64,000 nucleotides of DNA from Dendrobates tinctorius (lineage: Eukaryota): contig NW_027361677.1 of the NCBI RefSeq assembly GCF_039654945.1, positions 18,538,001 through 18,602,000 on the forward strand, in the 5' to 3' direction. This document shows, piece after piece, positions 19,424 through 30,600 of this stretch. The notes beneath the pieces are model-generated. The model saw only the letters and a list, made by a program, of their open reading frames with translations, searched no databases and was not told the origin of the DNA. Both the position numbers and the translations under genes were made by a program. Numbering within the stretch: the first letter of the stretch is position 1; every line of letters starts with the position of its first letter.

Positions 19424-20969
19424 AACTGTGTTCCAAATTATTATGCAGAAAGAGTTTAGGAGTGATAAGGTTAGAATTCTTTTGTCATTTAAACTCATTG
19501 ATCGTGATGTGTGTCAGGGCTCTTTATATCACTGAAAGCAATTGCAGATACCTGTGCACATTAGTTTGGCAGGTGTGTCCAAATAATGGCAAGACTACTT
19601 AAGAAGGCTGTTCCACATTATTAAGCAGCCTACATTTTTTGCCAAAATGGGAAAGAAAAGATGTGTTGGCTGCTGAGAAGCAACAAATTGTGGAGTATTT
19701 AGGTCAAGGCATGACTACAATCAACATTGCCAAGACACTTCATCGTGCTCATCGTACAATCAAGAAGTATGTAGCTGATTCCCAGCACACATGTGTGCGT
19801 GCGGATAAGGAAAAATTGAGGACTCTTTCCAACAGGCAATTGCGTCAGGTTAAAAGAGCAGCTGCAAAAATGCCTTATCATAGCAGCAGACAAGTTTTTG
19901 AAGCTGATGGTGCCTCTAACGTCCCCCGAACAACAAGATGCAGGGTCCTTCAGAGGTTTGCAGCTGTGCGTAAGCCATCCTGTCGACCATCTCTATCCAC
20001 TGCACACAAGCAGAAACGGCTCCAGTGGGCCAAACGATACATGAAGACTGACTTCCAAACTGTTCACCGATGAGTGCCGTGCAACGCTCGATGGTCCAGA
20101 TGGATGGAGTGGAGGATGGATGGTTGATAGACACCTCATGAAAACACGGCTAAGGCGCCAACAAGGAGGAGGTGGAGTAATGTTTTGGGCTGGAATCATG
20201 GGGAGAGAGATTGTCGGCCCCTTTAGGATCCCTGAAGGGGTAAAGATGAACTCCATAATCTATGTGGAGTTTCTAAAACAGCACTTCCTGCCATGGTTCA
20301 AGAGGAAGAACCGTGCTTTCCGCAGCAAGATCACTTTCATGCATGATAATGCACCGTCTCATGCTGCAAATAACACATCTGCATCTCTGGCTGCTATGGG
20401 AGGACAAACTTATGGTGTGGCCACCATCTTCCCCTGACCTCCACCCCATTGAGAACCTCTGGAGCATCATCAAAAGGAGTGCCTATGATGGCGGGAGGCA
20501 GTTCACATCTAAGCAACAGCCCTAGGAGGGTATTCTGTCCACATGCAAAACAACTGAAGCACAAACCATCCAAAAACTGACAAATTCAATGGACGAGAGA
20601 GTTCAGAAGCTTCTTTCCAACAAGGGGTCCTATGTGCAAATGTAACATCATGAAGAATAAAGTTTTCACTTGAAAACTGTTTGATTTTATTTTGTAATAA
20701 GCTGATAATGCTTATAATTTCACAATTGACCATTTTTTTTGTTCAAAATAAAAAGGTTGAAAACTCTGCTGTGCATAATAATTTGGAACATGCAGTTTGA
20801 GTGTTTATTATTTTAAAAAATATACTGTTTTCATCGGCAGTTTGTTCAAAAACATTGCAATTATACTAGAATATTAGATGACTGGAAAATAACAATGACT
20901 GCAATTCATATAGGTAATTTAGAGAAGATATGAGGAAATATTTTTTGCATAATAATTTGGAACACAGTG
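19424..20969 (+). mobile_element. Tc1/mariner DNA transposon with frameshifted DD34E-type transposase
   Basis: TIRs (C)ACTGTGTTCCAAATTATTATGCA with flanking TA; DEC, HDNAPSH and SPDLHPIENLW motifs in ~19647-20645; internal direct repeat of the TIR core at ~20772. Confidence 0.93.
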
Positions 20970-21642: not shown

Positions 21643-24600
21643 CTGCAAATAAGACATTGGGTTACTGTGGTTGGGGTGTTTGAGGACTAATAATGGCGGC
21701 TCTTCTTTTGACTAGTTGAACCTGAATTGACATCATCATTGCTCAAGGCCAGCTAATCAAAAGAAGAGCCACAGATTCCGGTAGGTCGGAGGCTCCCGTC
21801 CATCAGTCACCGATTTCCAATCAAGTAGAATCCAAAAAGTGCAGGTAACTACTAGCACAAAAAAGAGGGAAGTTGAGTGCCATAGAAATGCAAAATTTTA
21901 TTGAGAAACAAAAACTTTCAAAAAGTAAAAAATCAGGGACAGAATATGCAAAAGAAGCCACCCATTTATGACTGACTATAACAGAAATCCAAATCCATAT
22001 AATAGGCAATTGGACAATTGTAAAAAATGATTCAATGCAGGAGTACAAAAGACAAGCAAAAAAAAAAAAAAAAAGGTGTCACTGAATGATACTGTTGGAA
22101 AATTGTAAGAAATGATTCAAGGTATCAGACAACTTTTTTTTTTTTTTTTTTTTTACTTGTTTCTTGTAGTCCTGCATTGAATCGTCTCTTACAGTTGTCC
22201 AACAGGAGTACGAGAGACAAGCAAAAAAAAAAGTCATCACGGAATGAGGCCCACATTGTGTAATTTCTTTAACTTTAGAATTTGCAATAGTATTTAGATA
22301 GGTTTTATTTATTGGAATTGTTGCTAATTTGCCTCTGAATAAACATCAGAAAATTTGCATAGCAAAATAATCTGATTCTTTATATCCACAAAAATAGTTC
22401 AAAGTACTGAAACTTGTAAGCACTAATTATGTAGCAGTAAAAGGAAAACTGATATAGAAACAAGAGCCAACTCTAAATTTTCATTGTGAGATTTGATTTC
22501 AGGAGGTGAAAATCATTGAGAAAGGTCTCATGTCATAACATACCCTGACAACTTCTGAAAATATGTAGAGCAGACACTGGCGTGGCTGATAGAGCAGGTC
22601 TCGAGGTTTACTTTGTACCAACTCTACTAAATTGTCCATCATTGAACTTCTTCTGGACATTTGAGGTCGGTGCTAAGTCTCCCAGCGGTCACATGACATT
22701 GTCACCTGGCCACTGCAGCCGATCAGTGACTGATCGGCTACAGCCTTTTCTGTTCCTTTCTGACGGAATACTGAAAGGCTGAAGCAGTTGTGAGATTCTC
22801 AAGACACACAGCACTGATCCGGAGAGAAAGTACTTTCTTCAAATGATGTAATTTAGCTGTTATGAATATGCAGTCGTTAGCAACCACTTTTAGAATCATA
22901 GAATCGTAGAGTTGGAAGGGACCTCCTGGGCCATCTGGTCCAACCCCCTGCTCAAAGCAGGATTCGCTAAATCATCCCAGTTAGATGTCTGTCCAGCCTC
23001 TGTTTGAAGACTTCCATTGAAGGAGAACTCACCACTTCTCGTGGCAGCCTGTTCCACTCATTGATCACTCTAACTGTCAAAAAGTTTTTTTTTAATGGCA
23101 TCTGGCTGCAATGCTACACACAGAATGGTGTGGCATTGTTTTTGGAAGAATTTCATAAAAATCTGACATTGGTATATAGACGAGAAGTGATATTTACCTC
23201 CGGTGGCCAATAAATCATCGATTATCACAACCTTCTGTCCGGGGTCCACCGCATCAGTCTGGATTTCAATCTCAGCCTAGAGAAACCACAAAATACAGAT
23301 ATGAAATATTAACACGTCGGTAACCCCACTAGGACATAATTGTATATATTAATCTTGAGTTTTATTGTGGGCCTATAAAGGGGTTGCCCAATATTCCGAG
23401 AATCCCCTCTGAATCCCTACGTTTCCCCCTTGTAAAATAATAACACCTATACTCATCTCCGGTGTCGGAGCAATTCCAGCAGTGTCAACACTAGCTCTCC
23501 ATTCTCCCGGAGCTCATTTTTATTCGGTCGTCCATGACAGCACCACCTGAGAGAGGGGATCCGCCCTTTAGGAACAGGAAACCTACAGATACAAAAGGGT
23601 GGCACCTCTCCGACTCATCAGTTGGTTTCCTGTTCCTAACAAGGACAGAACTCCCTACAGATCGTCCGTCATGGATAACTGAAGACCCAGGCCAGCGGAC
23701 CGGCTCAGGTAGCGGGGGGTTCTCCTACCTCGGTCTCGCTGGGAGCCCTGGATGCGCCACGGTGGGTCCGGGTAGGATTTCCACGGCAGTGGTAAGAGCA
23801 GGCGGAGACAGGGTCCGGCGGATGCCTTCTCCATGGGACCGGTGATAAGGGGTCCCCCTGTGTCTCCTTCCCCGGAGCGGTCCGTTCGGGCGGGCGCCGC
23901 CGGCGGTGTCCCACAAGGGAGCGACGGTTCCGAGCCGGCGGCGCGGTGCTAGCCCCTTGCCGCGCGTCGCGGAAGTGACGCGGCGGAGGGGGCGGGGCCT
24001 AGTGCTGAAACCGGAAGTCGGATGCCGGTCGACTTCCGGTTGTTGAGGACACGCGCCGATGCGCGCCCGCCGCCTGGCGGGCCTGAAGGGGAGGGGGAGG
24101 ATCGCAGAGCGGTCCTATGGGGGGCCCGAACACCGGACGCAGTGCCTGCTGATCCGGAGGGGAAGCCTTCTTAATGCAGAAGGCATTGCTGCTGAGGTGC
24201 TTCTGGAGGCCCAGCGATGGACACAACAGAAGCCCCCATGGACCCACAAGAGGTGCAGCCCGTGGCAAAGCACCCCAGTGACCAGCCTAAGAGGCGGAAG
24301 GAAGGAAGTGGACAGAGCCACAGTAGCTCCTCTAGGCTCCTGCAGCCCCCCGTGATCCGGTACCTATCCTCATCTGCAAGGGTAAGAGATCTGCGAGAAT
24401 GTACCCTGATGCAGTGTCCCTTTATATTTTTTTGATTCTCAGGGGAAGAAGGCCACAGGGAAACAGAAGCACAAGGAATGTGCCCTCTGTAGTTGCCCCT
24501 TACCAGATGGTCACCCTAAGAGATTATGTCAGTCTTGCGTGAGACAGACGGTAGGGACGGAGATGAGGGGTAGAACGTGAGTGGAGTATCAGACTCTTAT

Positions 24601-27600
24601 ACTCTTCCCTATTTATGCAGGTAGCGGAAGAAGCTCCAAGCTTCGCTACGGACCTGAGGCAATTAATCAGGACGGAAATAAAAGCCCTATCAAAAGAAGA
24701 TTCTTCAAAAAGAGGACGGGCTACTGTTTCAGGCTCAGACTCTTCAGTCGGCCCTAGGAGGGAAGATATCTCCTCAGAGTCCTCGGCCTCCTCTTCTTCC
24801 TCCGAAGAAGATTCCAGCCGGTTCTGTTTTCCCTTGGACCATATCGATAAATTAATTAAAACCATAAGGTCAACCATGGGGGTAGAGGAAAAAAGACAGA
24901 ACTGTCTGCTCAGGACATTATGTTCTGGGGTCTAGACCCCAGAAAGCAAAGGACCTTTCCGTTAAACGAAAAAGTCCAGAACCTGATAGACAGGGAGTGG
25001 GAAAAAAGGGGTTCTATGCCGCCTGCTTTCAAGCGGAGGTACCCCTTTGAGGACCCAATAGTAAGTCGATGGGATAAGGCCTCCAAAAAGTCATCTATAC
25101 CCTTCGACGATATGGCCTCCCTTAAAGACCCCCTAGATAAAAAGGCAGATTCCTTTTTAAGGGGCACTTGGGAGATGTCAGCAGGCGCCCTAAGGCCAGC
25201 AATAGCAGCCACGTGCGCAGCCAGATCCATGATGGTCTGGCTGGATCAATTGGACTCCCAGCTAAAGGATGGGACCTCGCGAGCTTCCATCCGTAAGTCT
25301 CTTCCAATTATCCAAAATGCTGCTGCCTTTCTGGCAGATGCCTCGGCAGACTCTGTAAGAATGGCGGCCAGGTCTGCAAGCTTGTCTAATTTGGCCCGAA
25401 GAGCCCTCTGGTTGAAATGCTGGCCGGGAGATATCCAAGCCAGGTCCCGTCTCTGTTCTATCCCCTGTGAGGGTGAATACTTGTTCGGCCCCGTCCTAGA
25501 CGAACTGTTAGAGAAAGCCGGGGACGAGAAAAAGAAATTTCCGAGTCTGCCGAATATATCCTGGAGACGTCCCTTTTCTAGGAAAGGGTATTCCCGCAGG
25601 AGGCAGGCCAGAGATCAGAACAGATGGGACAACAAGAAAACCAGAGGTACGGGCTTCATGTTCGGAGGAGGGGGGCGCCAAGAAGGTCCATCACGGGATA
25701 ATAAGAAACCGCTCCAATGACTAGTGGCTCCAGTAGGAGGAAGATTATCTGCCTTCTACCCGGCCTGGGCCAGAATCTCAAATAGCAGCTGGATACTGGG
25801 GGTAATAGCTACAGGACTGCACCTAGAGTTCTCCTGCGTTCCCCAAGACCGGTTCAAGGTAACTCCGCTCAAATCTTCCCCGCTAGAACAAGCTGCCCTG
25901 GAAACCGAGGTCCTCGAGCTACTGGACAAAAAAGTCCTGACGAGAGTTCCAGAGGAAGAGAGGGGGAAAGGCTTCTATTCCCCCCTGTTCTTGGTCCGTA
26001 AACCGGACGACTCATTTAGGGCTATATTTAATCTCAAAGCCCTCAATAAATTTCTGGTCGTTCGACCATTTAAAATGGAAACAATTAACACCGCAATAAA
26101 AATGCTGTTTCAAAACTGCTTCATGGTGGTCCTAGATCTGAAAGACGCGTACTATCATATACCCATATGTCTAGCTCACCAACCTTTCCTTAGACTGGCG
26201 GTTCAGTTGGAGGGGTCAATCCAGCACTTCCAGTACGCGGTCTTACCCTTCGGGGTGGCAGTTGCACCCCGAGTATTCACCAAAGTGATGGCAGAGGTGA
26301 TGGCCCATCTGCGCGAATTAAATATTCTAGTCGTTCCCTATCTAGATGACCTCCTTATAATAGGCAGTTCAGCAGAGCAATGTTTAGAACAGTTACAGAA
26401 AACAACGGCGGCTCTAGAGCGGTTGGGATGGTTACTTAATATCAAAAAATCCCGTTTGCAGCCATTAAAAATTCAACAATTTTTAGGCCTAACCCTAGAT
26501 TCTAAAAAACAGGAATGCCGTCTGCCCCCAGAGAAGCTGCTGCACCTACATGGCCGGGTCCTGAACGCTTTCAACAACCCCTCCATGTCCCTCAGGAAAG
26601 CCATGTCCCTGTTGGGTTCCCTCTCGTCCTGCATTCCCGCGGTCCAGTGGGCCCAAGTTCATACGAGAACTCTACAGGGCGAAGTTTTGTGGTATCAGAG
26701 GTTTCTTGGGGATAACTTAGAAGGTCGACTGACCTTATCCAGAAACACAATAGAGTCCCTGGAATGGTGGCTAGAAAGAAATAACTTGTCTAGAGGGGTC
26801 CCTTGGGAGTATAACATTACCCGCGTGGTCACCACGGATGCAAGTCCTTCCGGTTGGGGGGCGCATATGGAGGGAATTCTGGTCCAGGGCCTATGGGAAC
26901 GGGATCAAATACAAATGTCTTCTAATTTAAAAGAATTGACAGCGGTAGCACACGCAGCTAAAGAGCTCCTTATGTATCTACAGGGCCATCACGTACGAGT
27001 TCTCTCGGACAATCGAGTGGCCGTGGCCTATATCAATCACCAAGGCGGAACTCGATCCAAAACTCTGATGAATGTGGCAGGACAGTTGTTCCAGCTAGCG
27101 GAGCGGCATTTTTTATCTCTCACGGCTCTTCACATAAGAGGGAAAGAAAACGTCGCGGCAGATTTCCTAAGCCGCAATCTGTTAAAACAGGGAGAGTGGA
27201 CCTTAAACACCTCCATTTTTGTTCAGATCATACAGAGATGGGGTCAACCAGAGGTGGATCTATTCACCACCAAAGAGAAATCAAAAACGAGACAGTTTTG
27301 CTCCCTAAACCCCAGGGAGATTCCTCTGGCAGTAGATGCGCTACTGATAAAATGGGACTTCAGGCTAGCCTATGCCTTTCCTCCCCTATCTCTACTTCCT
27401 CTGGTGTTGAGGAAGATCAGGAAGGACAAGGCAAGAGTCATAGTCATTGCCCCTTTCTGGCCCAGGAGAGCATGGTTCTCGAACCTCAGGATCATGTCGA
27501 TAGACGATCCTTGGGTTCTCCCGGACATCCCGGACCTTCTGTCCCAGGGCCCGGTCTTCCACCCTCAGGTGGCTGGCCTACATCTCACGGCGTGGAATTT

Positions 27601-30600
27601 GAGCGGTCACTCCTAAGGGGTAAAGGTTTCTCCCCAGACCTAATTGACACTCTACTAAAAAGTAGGAAAGTGGTGACAACTAAGATTTACGTCAGAATTT
27701 GGAAAAGATTCCTCCAAAGCTCAAATATAAATAATGACGATTCCGTCCCTATAGGCCAGATCTTGGAATTTTTACAAAAAGGGCTGGACCTGGGTCTCTC
27801 CACCAGTACCCTTAAAGTACAGGTATCTGCCTTAGGGGCCCTCTTTAGCTGCAACATCGCGGCTAATTACTGGGTCAATAGGTTTATCAAAGCAGCAAGT
27901 AGGTCCAGACCAATAGTAAAGAATAGACTCACGCCATGGGATTTGAACCTAGTCCTCACAGCTATGACAGAAGCGCCATTTGAGCCCATCTCGTCAGCCT
28001 CTATTAGGAGCCTGTCCCTCAAGATAGCTTTCCTGATAGCCATAACGTCAGCCCGTAGGGTAAGCGACATTCAGGCATTGTCTAGGCGCCCACCTTTTCT
28101 TCAGGTAAAAGAGGATAGGGTAATACTTAGACCTGACCCAGTGTATTTACCAAAAGTAGCCTCCAGCTTTCATAGGTCGCAGGAAATAGTCCTCCCATCC
28201 TTCCTCCCTAAGCCAACTAATGAGAAGGAGGAGAAGCTACACACTTTGGATGTTAGGAGATGCCTCTTAGAGTATCTAGCGGCTACCGATCCCTGGAAGA
28301 AGGACAATGCCCTCTTTGTCTCCTACCAAGGCCCTAGGAAAGGTCTTAGGGTGTCCAAAAGTACTCTAGCCAGATGGATTAGAAAAGCAATCTCGTTAGC
28401 TTATACCTCAAAAGGTAGAGTAGCTCCGGAGAAATTGAAGGCGCATTCCACCAGAGCCATGGCGACCTCGTGGGCCGAGAGATCGGAAGTCTCCATCGAC
28501 CAGATTTGTAAGGCGGCCACTTGGTCCTCTCCGAGCACTTTTTATAGTCATTATAGGCTAGACTTGGGTGCTTCTGCAGACCTCTCCTTCGGTATCAGGG
28601 TTTTGCAGGCTGTAGTCCCCCCCTAAAGTAGTGATTACTCTCTGTAATTCTCTCAGGTGGTGCTGTCATGGACGACCGAATAAAGTCTTAGTTACTCACT
28701 GGTTAACGGTATTTTTCTGAGTCCATGACAGCACCCGTATATTCCCTCCCTTAAATTTAATTGGGGTGTGCACGTCTATTTCTTGTATGCTCACTGGTGA
28801 TAAAAGTTTATAATTGTAAAGAATACTGTACATAAATCATGCATTAACCTTGGAAGTCCTCTTGTGCTCTGTAATCCAACTAATGCGTGGGAGAGGTGCC
28901 ACCCTTTTGTATCTTTAGGTTTCCTGTTCCTAAAGGGCGGATCCCCTCTCTCAGGTGGTGCTGTCATGGACTCCGAAAAATACCGTTAACCGGTGAGTAA
29001 CTAAGACTTTTCTCTCTAAAAGCTTCCTTCCACCTCCCGGGGCTCCATTTCACCTCTTGAGGCTCCTTTCACTCTCACTTCCACCTGCCGGGGCTCCCTT
29101 TGCTCTCCTTTCCGTCTTCTGGGGCTCCCTTCCCTCTCAAGGCTCCCACCTCCTCAGGTTCCCTTCCAAACCAACTCCCAGGGCTCCCTTCCACCTCCCG
29201 AGGTTCCCTTGGCTTGCTCTTCCACCACCTGAGACTCCATTCGCACTCCCTTCCACCTCCCAGGGCTCCCTTCACCCTTCTTTTCCCTCTCATGGCTCCC
29301 TTCCACCTCCTGGGGCTCCTTTCGCTCTCCCTTCCACCTACTGGGGTTCCGGAGTTCCTTTCGCTTTCCCATCTACCTCCTGGGCTCCATTCCCTCTTCC
29401 GGGGTTGCTTTCGCTCTCCCTTCCACCTCCTGGGGCTCCCTTCCCTCTTCCAGGGTTCCTTTCGCTCTCCCCTCCACCTCCTGGGGCTCCCTTCCCTCTT
29501 CCAGGGTTCCTTTCGCTCTCCCCTCCACCTCCTGGGGCTCCCTTCCCTCTTCCAGGGTTCCTTTCGCTCTCCGTTCCACCTCCCGGGGCTTCCTTTCCTT
29601 TCCCTTCCTAAGGACATAATTAACATCAGGAGTAGGTGAGGGCAGCAGCACCTATCACTTCCTCCAGACATCTTGATTTTTCAGAAGGAGAGGAAACTGA
29701 AGGCAGTGCTGATCGGCATTGCATGTACCTGCACCAATACAACTGGAACAGCGCCGCCACCGGAGGAGAGGATAGGTTTTTATTTTACTGGGGGAAATTA
29801 CTAACAGGGATTCAGAAGGGGTGGTCCGGGTAGTGACTCTGTGCCCCCCGTGCTGGCGGTATTCACTAATGCTCTGCACGCACCTTTCCGTACTCCAGAG
29901 AATAGGACACTGACTCCGTCGGACCCGGTAACTTGCCCTTTTTCCGAATCAACACAAACCCAATTCCAAGTCTTTGTGCCAGTGCCGGACCGAAGAGAAA
30001 CCCGCGGGCGTCCAGACCTGGAAGAGGGGATGCCGGGTAATAGTTACCGTATTTTTCGGACTATAAGACGCACCCCAATTTTCAGAAGGAAAATAGGGAA
30101 AAAAAATAATAATGTGTCAAATGGGGGTCCGTCTTACAGTCCGAATTCAGATTACCTGGGAAGGGATCTGGCACAGGTGGAGAAGTAGACACAGGGGTCA
30201 TTCAGTGGTCCAGGCTTGTGCGGTGGCGGCGGCTCTGTGCTGGGGCAGCTGCGCTGGGGCAGGGGCAGCTGTGCTGGGGCAGCTGTGGCAGGGGCAGGTG
30301 GGCTCTGCGGTTGTGGCAGCGCTCTGCGGTGCGGTGGTGGCAGCGGGCTGTGCTCCGATGCAGGGGCGGCAGCTCCGCCGGCGTATCTTCGCAGCCCAGA
30401 GGCCCCCGCACACCCCTTGCTGGGCTCCGCCATGTTGCGGTGGCCTCCGGGAGCATGGACGCCGGCAAGATGGCCGCCGGTCCGGGGACAGCGCATGCGC
30501 AGCTTCAGATCTCGTGCCGAGATCTCGGGGGACGAGATTCAAATCTCGGCAACGAGATCTCGTCCCCCGAGATCTTGGGACGAGATCTGAAGCTGCGCAT

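Follow-up and report, generated by a model that had tools for sequence, protein, structure and literature searches.

A DIRS1-like retrotransposon of the frog Dendrobates tinctorius with a gag gene probably interrupted by two introns, one of them shared with related anuran elements

DIRS retrotransposons are a very abundant class of element in frog genomes. The DIRS1-like elements described from Xenopus (e.g., DIRS-37_XT) have three overlapping open reading frames (ORFs), encoding a Gag of LAP2alpha type, a reverse transcriptase (RT) with RNase H, and a tyrosine recombinase (YR), together with inverted terminal repeats (ITRs) plus an internal complementary region (ICR); the survey that describes them mentions introns or splicing zero times (PMC9210276). 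A LAP2alpha-type gag is a known state of vertebrate DIRS elements (PMC9210276; PMC4495291). Introns are kept through retrotransposition by Penelope-like elements (PLEs), a habit called "highly unusual among retroelements" (PMC8557442; Arkhipova et al. 2003); in the functionally characterised PLEs Penelope and Chlamys-3 the intron lies in the 5′ untranslated region, and its presence has been ascribed to the PLE copying mechanism (PMC8557442). Among long terminal repeat (LTR) elements, copia, BARE1 (with a Gag-only subgenomic RNA), Ogre, and CRR use splicing to part translated RNA from template (PMC3735527; for Ogre, PMC2596294). Here we describe one complete DIRS1-like element at positions 23519-29010 of a 64,000-nucleotide (nt) stretch of Dendrobates tinctorius DNA (NCBI RefSeq assembly GCF_039654945.1, contig NW_027361677.1, positions 18,538,001 to 18,602,000, forward strand; hereafter the window). 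The 5′ part of its gag is probably cut by two real U2-type introns, in which case the unspliced RNA would be copied and the spliced RNA translated.

Like the Xenopus elements, the window element has the ORFs, the ITRs, and the ICR, but its gag is interrupted and Pfam detects no methyltransferase in it. With Penelope-like elements it would share a spliceosomal intron kept through copying, whereas its own intron falls within the gag coding region, and it relies on a YR. The likeness to the LTR elements lies in partial splicing with an unspliced template, suboptimal signals keeping both forms; in copia and BARE, however, the unspliced RNA still encodes Gag and splicing shifts the Gag:Pol ratio, while the unspliced RNA of the window element cannot encode full Gag. 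Ogre, in which splicing joins ORFs, is the nearest LTR case. No description of introns in DIRS gag was found in the literature searched, an earlier mention (e.g., Goodwin and Poulter 2001) being possible. The novelty lies in a coding-region intron that a DIRS element has inherited and in the conserved layout of its paired donors; direct RNA proof for this is thin. If the reading is true, DIRS would be a second retroelement class, besides the Penelope-like elements, that keeps introns through retrotransposition.

An initial annotation, made from the letters of the window, had described a retrotransposon gag split by two spliceosomal introns with its zinc finger on a separate exon. The stretch in question is the 5′ part of the gag gene of a DIRS1-like element, as the ITRs, ICR, RT/RNase H, and YR confirm, and the boundaries given for it (24217-24381, 24382-24442, 24443-24550, 24551-24620, and 24621 onward) proved exact in position and letters. 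All parts lie on the forward strand. Exon 1, in the extent first proposed (24217-24381), opens with the ATG at 24217, runs for 55 codons and ends at AGG|GTAAGA; its N-terminus aligns with protein P0004. Segment 1 (24382-24442, 61 nt) follows this donor and closes with a T-rich tract and CAG at 24442|24443. Exon 2 (24443-24550) has 108 nt and 36 codons for a zinc-knuckle-like module, CxxC-x12-CxxC, to which no Pfam family matched. Segment 2 (24551-24620, 70 nt) runs from ACG|GTAGGG to TTTATGCAG|, with a strong GTGAGT at 24577 and a candidate branch point, CTTAT, at -25, and exon 3 (24621-25720), which opens with VAEEAPSF, holds the LAP2alpha-like domain. Exon 2 is in phase 0 on both sides, so that skipping of its 108 nt would leave an in-frame Gag lacking the knuckle.

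Several features set the two segments apart from their flanks. Segment 1 has a GC content of 0.39 and a T content of 0.38, against 0.60 and 0.13 in exon 1. Both segments contain in-frame stops on readthrough, and the unspliced frame from the ATG at 24217 reaches a stop after 72 codons; as the reading frames lie, the knuckle exon cannot be joined to either neighbouring exon unless splicing occurs. Both junctions are phase 0, given the donor at 24381|24382. When both segments are taken out, the conceptual Gag aligns with seven homologous frog Gag proteins with no gap at either junction (at the second, C-V-R-Q-T|V-A-E-E-A-P-S-F in the window against C-I-K-K-T-I-Q-E-E-T-P-S-F). The gapless alignment and the base composition of segment 1 together make an intron-like pattern beyond what chance would give. 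The marks of U2-type introns are present in both segments, namely GT..AG ends, a pyrimidine tract, and a branch-point candidate, and the donors are weak (GTACCT, GTAGGG) except for the strong GTAAGA. U12-type introns were rejected, as the donors do not fit, by eye, the U12 consensus.

Relatives of this gag come from frogs. A search with its C-terminal part returned only frog proteins, up to 63% identical and drawn from NCBI models and from Logan contigs, and a profile search with ten Gag homologues matched in frogs only; a protein search with the exon-3 piece gave no matches. For comparison there were 12 more DIRS elements, some from six named frog species and others from unidentified sequencing runs, and eight NCBI frog gene models were mapped exactly, exon by exon, onto genomic loci. 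Seven of the eight models, from Ranitomeya imitator, R. variabilis (three), Bufo gargarizans, Engystomops pustulosus, and Dendropsophus ebraccatus, have one phase-0 intron at the place of segment 1, with lengths of 74, 102, 83, 89, 87, 99, and 89 nt, and in each it lies 8-15 codons before the first Cys of the knuckle. The eighth, from a distant family of Lithobates pipiens (28% identity), differs in that its intron, 87 nt long and of phase 2, lies further upstream. Logan contigs L002-L005, L011, and L013 keep intron 1 too, as does L001 in a second copy that is not annotated and lies on the opposite strand. A short intron occurs in all 12 relatives and at the gag position of the window in 11 of them. 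At the NCBI-model loci that were checked (L001, L006-L010), ORFs for RT and YR stand directly behind gag, which makes these loci transposons and not domesticated host genes. All four knuckle Cys stay the same throughout the homologue alignment (A2), which argues that selection acts on the knuckle and that it must be translated.

Intron 1 of the window resembles the introns 1 of L008 and L001 (z 5-6 against shuffled sequences); part of the likeness is a block, about 25 nt long, that follows the strong donor. As judged from sequence comparison, the copies of intron 1 go back to one intron that passed through retrotransposition as the RT diverged to 51-65% identity. The block itself is common to four families (window 24382-24408; L008 6215-6241; L001 3243-3269; and the second copy on the minus strand of L001), with a consensus of roughly GTRAGWGATCTNCGWGAAWGT, the rest of the intron being different; it could possibly be a binding site for a protein or an RNA.

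The history of segment 2 is different. No intron was found at its place in any of the 12 relatives, and in homologous frog proteins the knuckle is contiguous with its flanks. The zinc knuckle therefore has an exon of its own only in the family of the window, and to that family the initial annotation's claim of a separate zinc-finger exon must be confined. A derivation of intron 2 by copying of intron 1 is not claimed, since the similarity between them is weak and inconsistent (best z 3.7, most below 1).

Evidence from sequencing runs comes from Logan contigs of one organism, in which three runs that are probably RNA (X1, X5, and X7) and one whole-genome DNA run (X6) were placed on the whole element; the gag contigs of the window species in these runs are at most 721 nt long. 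X1, X5, and X7 yielded small sets of contigs, with long ones over RT-YR, that cover 29-30 of 30 bins, and transcription of the family appears to run over the full length of the element. In X1 only, one contig (depth 5.6, with a short side of 23 nt) joins 24549/50 to 24620/21, dropping 70 nt with GT..AG ends; the form retaining segment 2 has a depth of 28.5, a spliced:retained ratio of roughly 1:5. Another X1 contig begins exactly at 24620, as expected for a branch in the assembly graph. The joint uses the weak first donor of segment 2 and not the GTGAGT downstream. Of the two junctions that the initial annotation proposed to look for, 24550^24621 thus has one joint of its type, and for 24381^24443 there is none among the joints listed. 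Unspliced RNA clearly dominates, and the case for splicing of intron 1 is built on conservation and the NCBI models.

The DNA run bears on another explanation, also named in the initial annotation as the case that would overturn its proposal, in which the two segments are private indels of a decayed copy and the family consensus is a continuous ORF. The window copy does have one private frame break (see below), which speaks for this explanation. In X6, however, segment 2 is present in a contig of depth ~450 and the form shorter by 70 nt was not found, which makes segment 2 the state of the family and not a private insertion; segment 1, for its part, is homologous to the introns of eleven other elements. 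These observations largely refute the explanation by private indels, and we consider it very improbable. They are also what is expected of an intron-retaining retroelement, with segment 2 at a DNA depth of ~450 and intron 1 found across families whose RTs are 51-65% identical.

A second alternative holds that the segments are not usefully spliced, being tolerated insertions or decay, and that a LAP2alpha-like protein lacking the knuckle is made from a downstream start such as the ATG at 24615-24617, which lies late in segment 2 and is in frame with exon 3. The dominance of unspliced contigs everywhere and the in-frame intronic ATGs of several relatives speak for it. The relatives also provide evidence to the contrary. 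Eight of the twelve (L001, its second-strand copy, L006, L007, L009, L010, L011, and L015) have an in-frame stop after donor 1 and before exon 2, and no in-frame ATG follows that stop within the intron; translation from upstream can therefore reach exon 2 in these elements only if the RNA is spliced. In seven of the eight the acceptor's own TAG provides the stop, and in L007 exon 2 opens with an ATG, making a downstream start possible there. The invariant Cys of the knuckle across families, the conserved GT/AG signals, and several short upstream ORFs ahead of the ATG at 24615 are further arguments against translation from such a start, and this explanation is improbable, if less so than private indels.

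One clade of relatives shows a different arrangement around its donor. In L002 (483-488), L013 (~139-147), and P0017/P0021, a strong U1-type site overlaps an ATG (ATGGTRAGYCC, encoding M-V-S-P), and in some families of this clade the frame of that ATG crosses the intron into exon 2. In those families the unspliced RNA could encode a Gag with a different N-terminus.

Where intron 1 begins is a separate question, as the window has two candidate donors. A weak one, CCG|GTACCT, lies at 24359|24360, 22 nt upstream of the strong AGG|GTAAGA at 24381|24382, and would give an intron of 83 nt (24360-24442). None of the 9 sequences in alignment A1 departs from its CGGTA, and the donor of the relatives, whether annotated or in phase, is this invariant weak CG|GTA in all except Lithobates. 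A strong U1-type GTRAG follows the first donor by 19-34 nt in all 12 relatives; in Lithobates both sites are strong and are 23 nt apart. The background chance of a GTRAG between +19 and +34 is 0.036 per window of that size, and because the families are related, the product of these chances would overstate the significance. Segment 2 has a like layout, with the weak ACG|GTAGGG followed by AAC|GTGAGT at +26; use of the latter would leave an intron of 44 nt, so it cannot be a working donor. RNA structure near the paired donors gave z scores of -1.1 to +0.6 in five families, and we claim no structure there.

The initial annotation had chosen the donor at 24381|24382, which keeps the frame in the window copy, while the conserved donor of the family is 24359|24360. 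It is a serious alternative, to which we give somewhat less than an even chance, that intron 1 is real and that its working donor is the conserved weak site, AGG|GTAAGA being a second U1-type motif inside the intron. The donor at 24381|24382 would then be in frame only through a one-letter change of length within the final 24 nt of exon 1, such as in the C-run at 24346-24351, a change that would have occurred in the window copy or its subfamily and would leave exon 1 of this copy broken as well. The first donor is in phase with the ATG-started exon-1 ORF in 11 of 12 relatives (L011 is truncated by the start of its contig), but in the window the conserved donor is out of phase (8 open codons) and 24381|24382 is in phase. 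Besides the invariance of CGGTA, the homologous introns of 74-102 nt accommodate 83 nt and not 61, the joint of intron 2 uses the weak first donor and not GTGAGT, and the window copy already has one break in a homopolymer run, at 24889-24894. From 24382, moreover, the candidate branch points are only ~27-42 nt away, a distance that is short for vertebrate splicing. Against the conserved donor, no difference in the length of the C-run is found among the indels listed, with DNA contigs at a depth of 2740 in that bin; an indel in exactly those 24 nt is unlikely a priori; and the ORF of 55 codons reaches the strong donor cleanly. On balance the donor at 24381|24382 is slightly better than an even bet, with 24359|24360 not far behind it.

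That the gag of this element is cut by two spliceosomal introns is thus probable, on the strength of the U2-type marks of both segments, the intron at the place of segment 1 in eleven other elements, and the one joint at segment 2, with segment 1 contributing no junction. Several points weigh against it. The joint of intron 2 is a single contig with a short side of 23 nt, and both ends of the skip contain the same five letters, GGTAG, which a template switch could have used; X1, X5, and X7, moreover, are only probably RNA. The junction of intron 1 was found in none of X1, X5, X7, and X6 among the joints listed, and Logan contigs of related families and the members of their clusters all keep intron 1, with no spliced form. 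In the window copy the conserved donor is out of frame, and the donor that is in frame gives an intron of 61 nt, below the annotated intron of every homologue. Finally, in P0017, P0021, and L008 an ATG inside the intron shares the frame of exon 2, and Gag may not need splicing there.

In the reading that we prefer, with two U2-type introns, intron 1 would be ancestral to a large clade of anuran DIRS elements, ending at 24442 and beginning at 24360 or 24382, with a fixed layout in which a weak CG|GTA is followed after 19-34 nt by a strong GTRAG, then by a pyrimidine tract and YAG. Intron 2 (24551-24620) would be a later gain in the family of the window, with a like two-site layout, and would isolate the knuckle on its 108-nt exon. 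The spliced RNA would serve as the messenger for Gag, given that the frames allow a knuckle-containing Gag to be read only from spliced RNA, and probably also as the messenger for a Gag-RT protein, through readthrough at UGA-CUAG into the in-frame RT. The unspliced RNA would be the template for reverse transcription; because the introns persist in many copies and in families with RT identities of ~50-65%, we infer that the RNA that is reverse transcribed is unspliced, selective reverse transcription being deduced from this retention only. Weak donors probably keep most transcripts unspliced, a notion that fits the ratio of ~1:5 for intron 2 in X1 and the unspliced contigs in other frogs, and the strong downstream U1 site may serve as a brake or decoy. 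This division of labour between a spliced messenger and an unspliced template is consistent with the data, though not proven by them.

A more specific proposal, which we regard as rather unlikely but worth stating, is that the paired donors constitute a conserved splicing-control module of anuran DIRS elements, in which the weak in-frame CG|GTA would be the donor and the strong U1 site, too near the branch point to splice well, would act as a decoy or brake that sets the share of spliced and unspliced RNA. Strong, non-productive U1 sites beside a real donor are present in the negative regulator of splicing of Rous sarcoma virus (RSV) and as the pseudo-5′ sites of the P-element IVS3. The analogy with these would lie in a strong U1-type site near a real donor in a mobile element that needs unspliced RNA; position and polarity differ, the candidate decoy of the anuran DIRS elements being 19-34 nt downstream, inside a very short intron. 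If the module exists, the like layout of the independently gained intron 2 would mean that it was re-created under selection.

The gag of the window copy is not itself intact. Its frame breaks at a run of six A (24889-24894), and the stop at 24933-24935, with which the feature of the initial annotation ended, results from this break; in another frame, gag runs on to a TGA at 25718-25720. The length of the A-run in the window is not that found in contigs of X5, X7, and X6, so the break is private to the window copy. The claim that doubly spliced RNA makes Gag accordingly fails for this copy, which because of the break cannot make full Gag even when both introns are removed. A programmed -1 frameshift at 24889-24894 was rejected, as there is no slippery heptamer in the zero-frame codons and the contigs vary in run length.

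Behind the gag stop, UGA at 25718-25720, comes CUAG, and the RT ORF follows in the same frame. UGA-CUAG is a context that favours stop-codon readthrough. The suggestion that splicing also gates production of RT is coherent with this arrangement, readthrough being its inferred step. In protein P0076 (an NCBI model from Ranitomeya variabilis, 684 amino acids), a LAP2alpha-like gag and an RT domain stand in one chain, so that this model must bridge the gag stop somehow.

These observations bear on the origin of host exons with a DIRS gag domain. TMPO and ZNF451 captured a DIRS gag that, as Abascal et al. inferred, came with a splice acceptor of its own (PMC4495291). Lying immediately upstream of the body of gag, the acceptor of intron 1 is conserved and is a candidate for that captured acceptor, and if the module exists, the conserved acceptor would explain why DIRS gag was captured twice as an alternative 3′ exon (LAP2alpha, ZNF451). 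The mammalian LAP2alpha exon of TMPO and the ZNF451 exon share the gag domain with the window element but are host exons and are not mobile (PMC4495291). The introns of DIRS gag may thus bear on how the gag became the mammalian LAP2alpha exon. For annotation, frog DIRS gag elements are currently labelled as 'lamina-associated polypeptide 2-like' genes. An intron removed for Gag yet kept in the copied RNA would offer a concrete, testable answer to the question, largely unknown so far, of how DIRS elements express overlapping ORFs and share out their RNA between translation and reverse transcription.

The remaining architecture of the element is that of a DIRS1-like retrotransposon, with RT/RNase H, a YR in place of a DDE integrase, ITRs and an ICR, and a LAP2alpha gag. 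An inverted-repeat search placed the left ITR at 23519-23628 and the right ITR at 28873-29010, with arms 23530-23628 and 28873-28971 that are 95% complementary over 99 nt. The ICR (28649-28735) complements both outer ends: 23519-23554 and 28649-28684 are 100% complementary, and 28682-28735 pairs as an inverted repeat with the right end, 28957-29010. The C-terminal part of gag (24920-25720) matches Pfam LAP2alpha (PF11560) at E=6.5e-14. The RT/RNase H ORF (25724-27616, forward strand), in the same frame as the end of gag, matches RVT_1 at E=1.5e-19 and RT_RNaseH at E=4.3e-5 (24.0 bits, slightly under the cut-off of 24.8), and its RT has 51-65% amino acid identity with those of other frog DIRS loci. 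A methyltransferase-like domain follows RNase H in many DIRS1-like families; beyond RT and RNase H, no Pfam match at E<=0.1, and so none to such a domain, was found in the 630-residue ORF. The YR ORF (27196-28626, forward strand) overlaps the RT ORF and matches Phage_integrase at E=1.6e-4 (22 bits, below the cut-off of 27.1); the main match to YR ORFs behind RT in other DIRS loci is at 44-57% identity, and a short C-terminal piece reaches up to 73%. The RT and YR ORFs are intact in the window copy. Self-BLAST found no second copy of the element in the window, and an Rfam scan of 23000-29700 gave no match.

Within the overlap of RT and YR (27204-27581), X1, X5, and X7 contain joints that drop ~375 nt with ends other than GT..AG (depth 16-43) and that do not appear in that form in X6; they may represent a subfamily with a diverged or replaced segment. 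Acceptor-like sites with a pyrimidine tract and CAG occur at 27316 and 27466, where a phase-0 exon 1 would join 436 or 386 residues of YR in frame; a joint from exon 1 to YR was not found among the joints listed for X1, X5, X7, and X6. Outside the element, C/T-rich tandem arrays with periods of 20, 31, and 51 occupy 29025-29603, starting 15 nt past its right end and including five copies of the 51-nt unit at 92% match. Upstream of it, at 19639-20437, lie broken transposase ORFs of Tc1/mariner type, which match HTH_Tnp_Tc3_2 at an E of 3e-6, below the cut-off.

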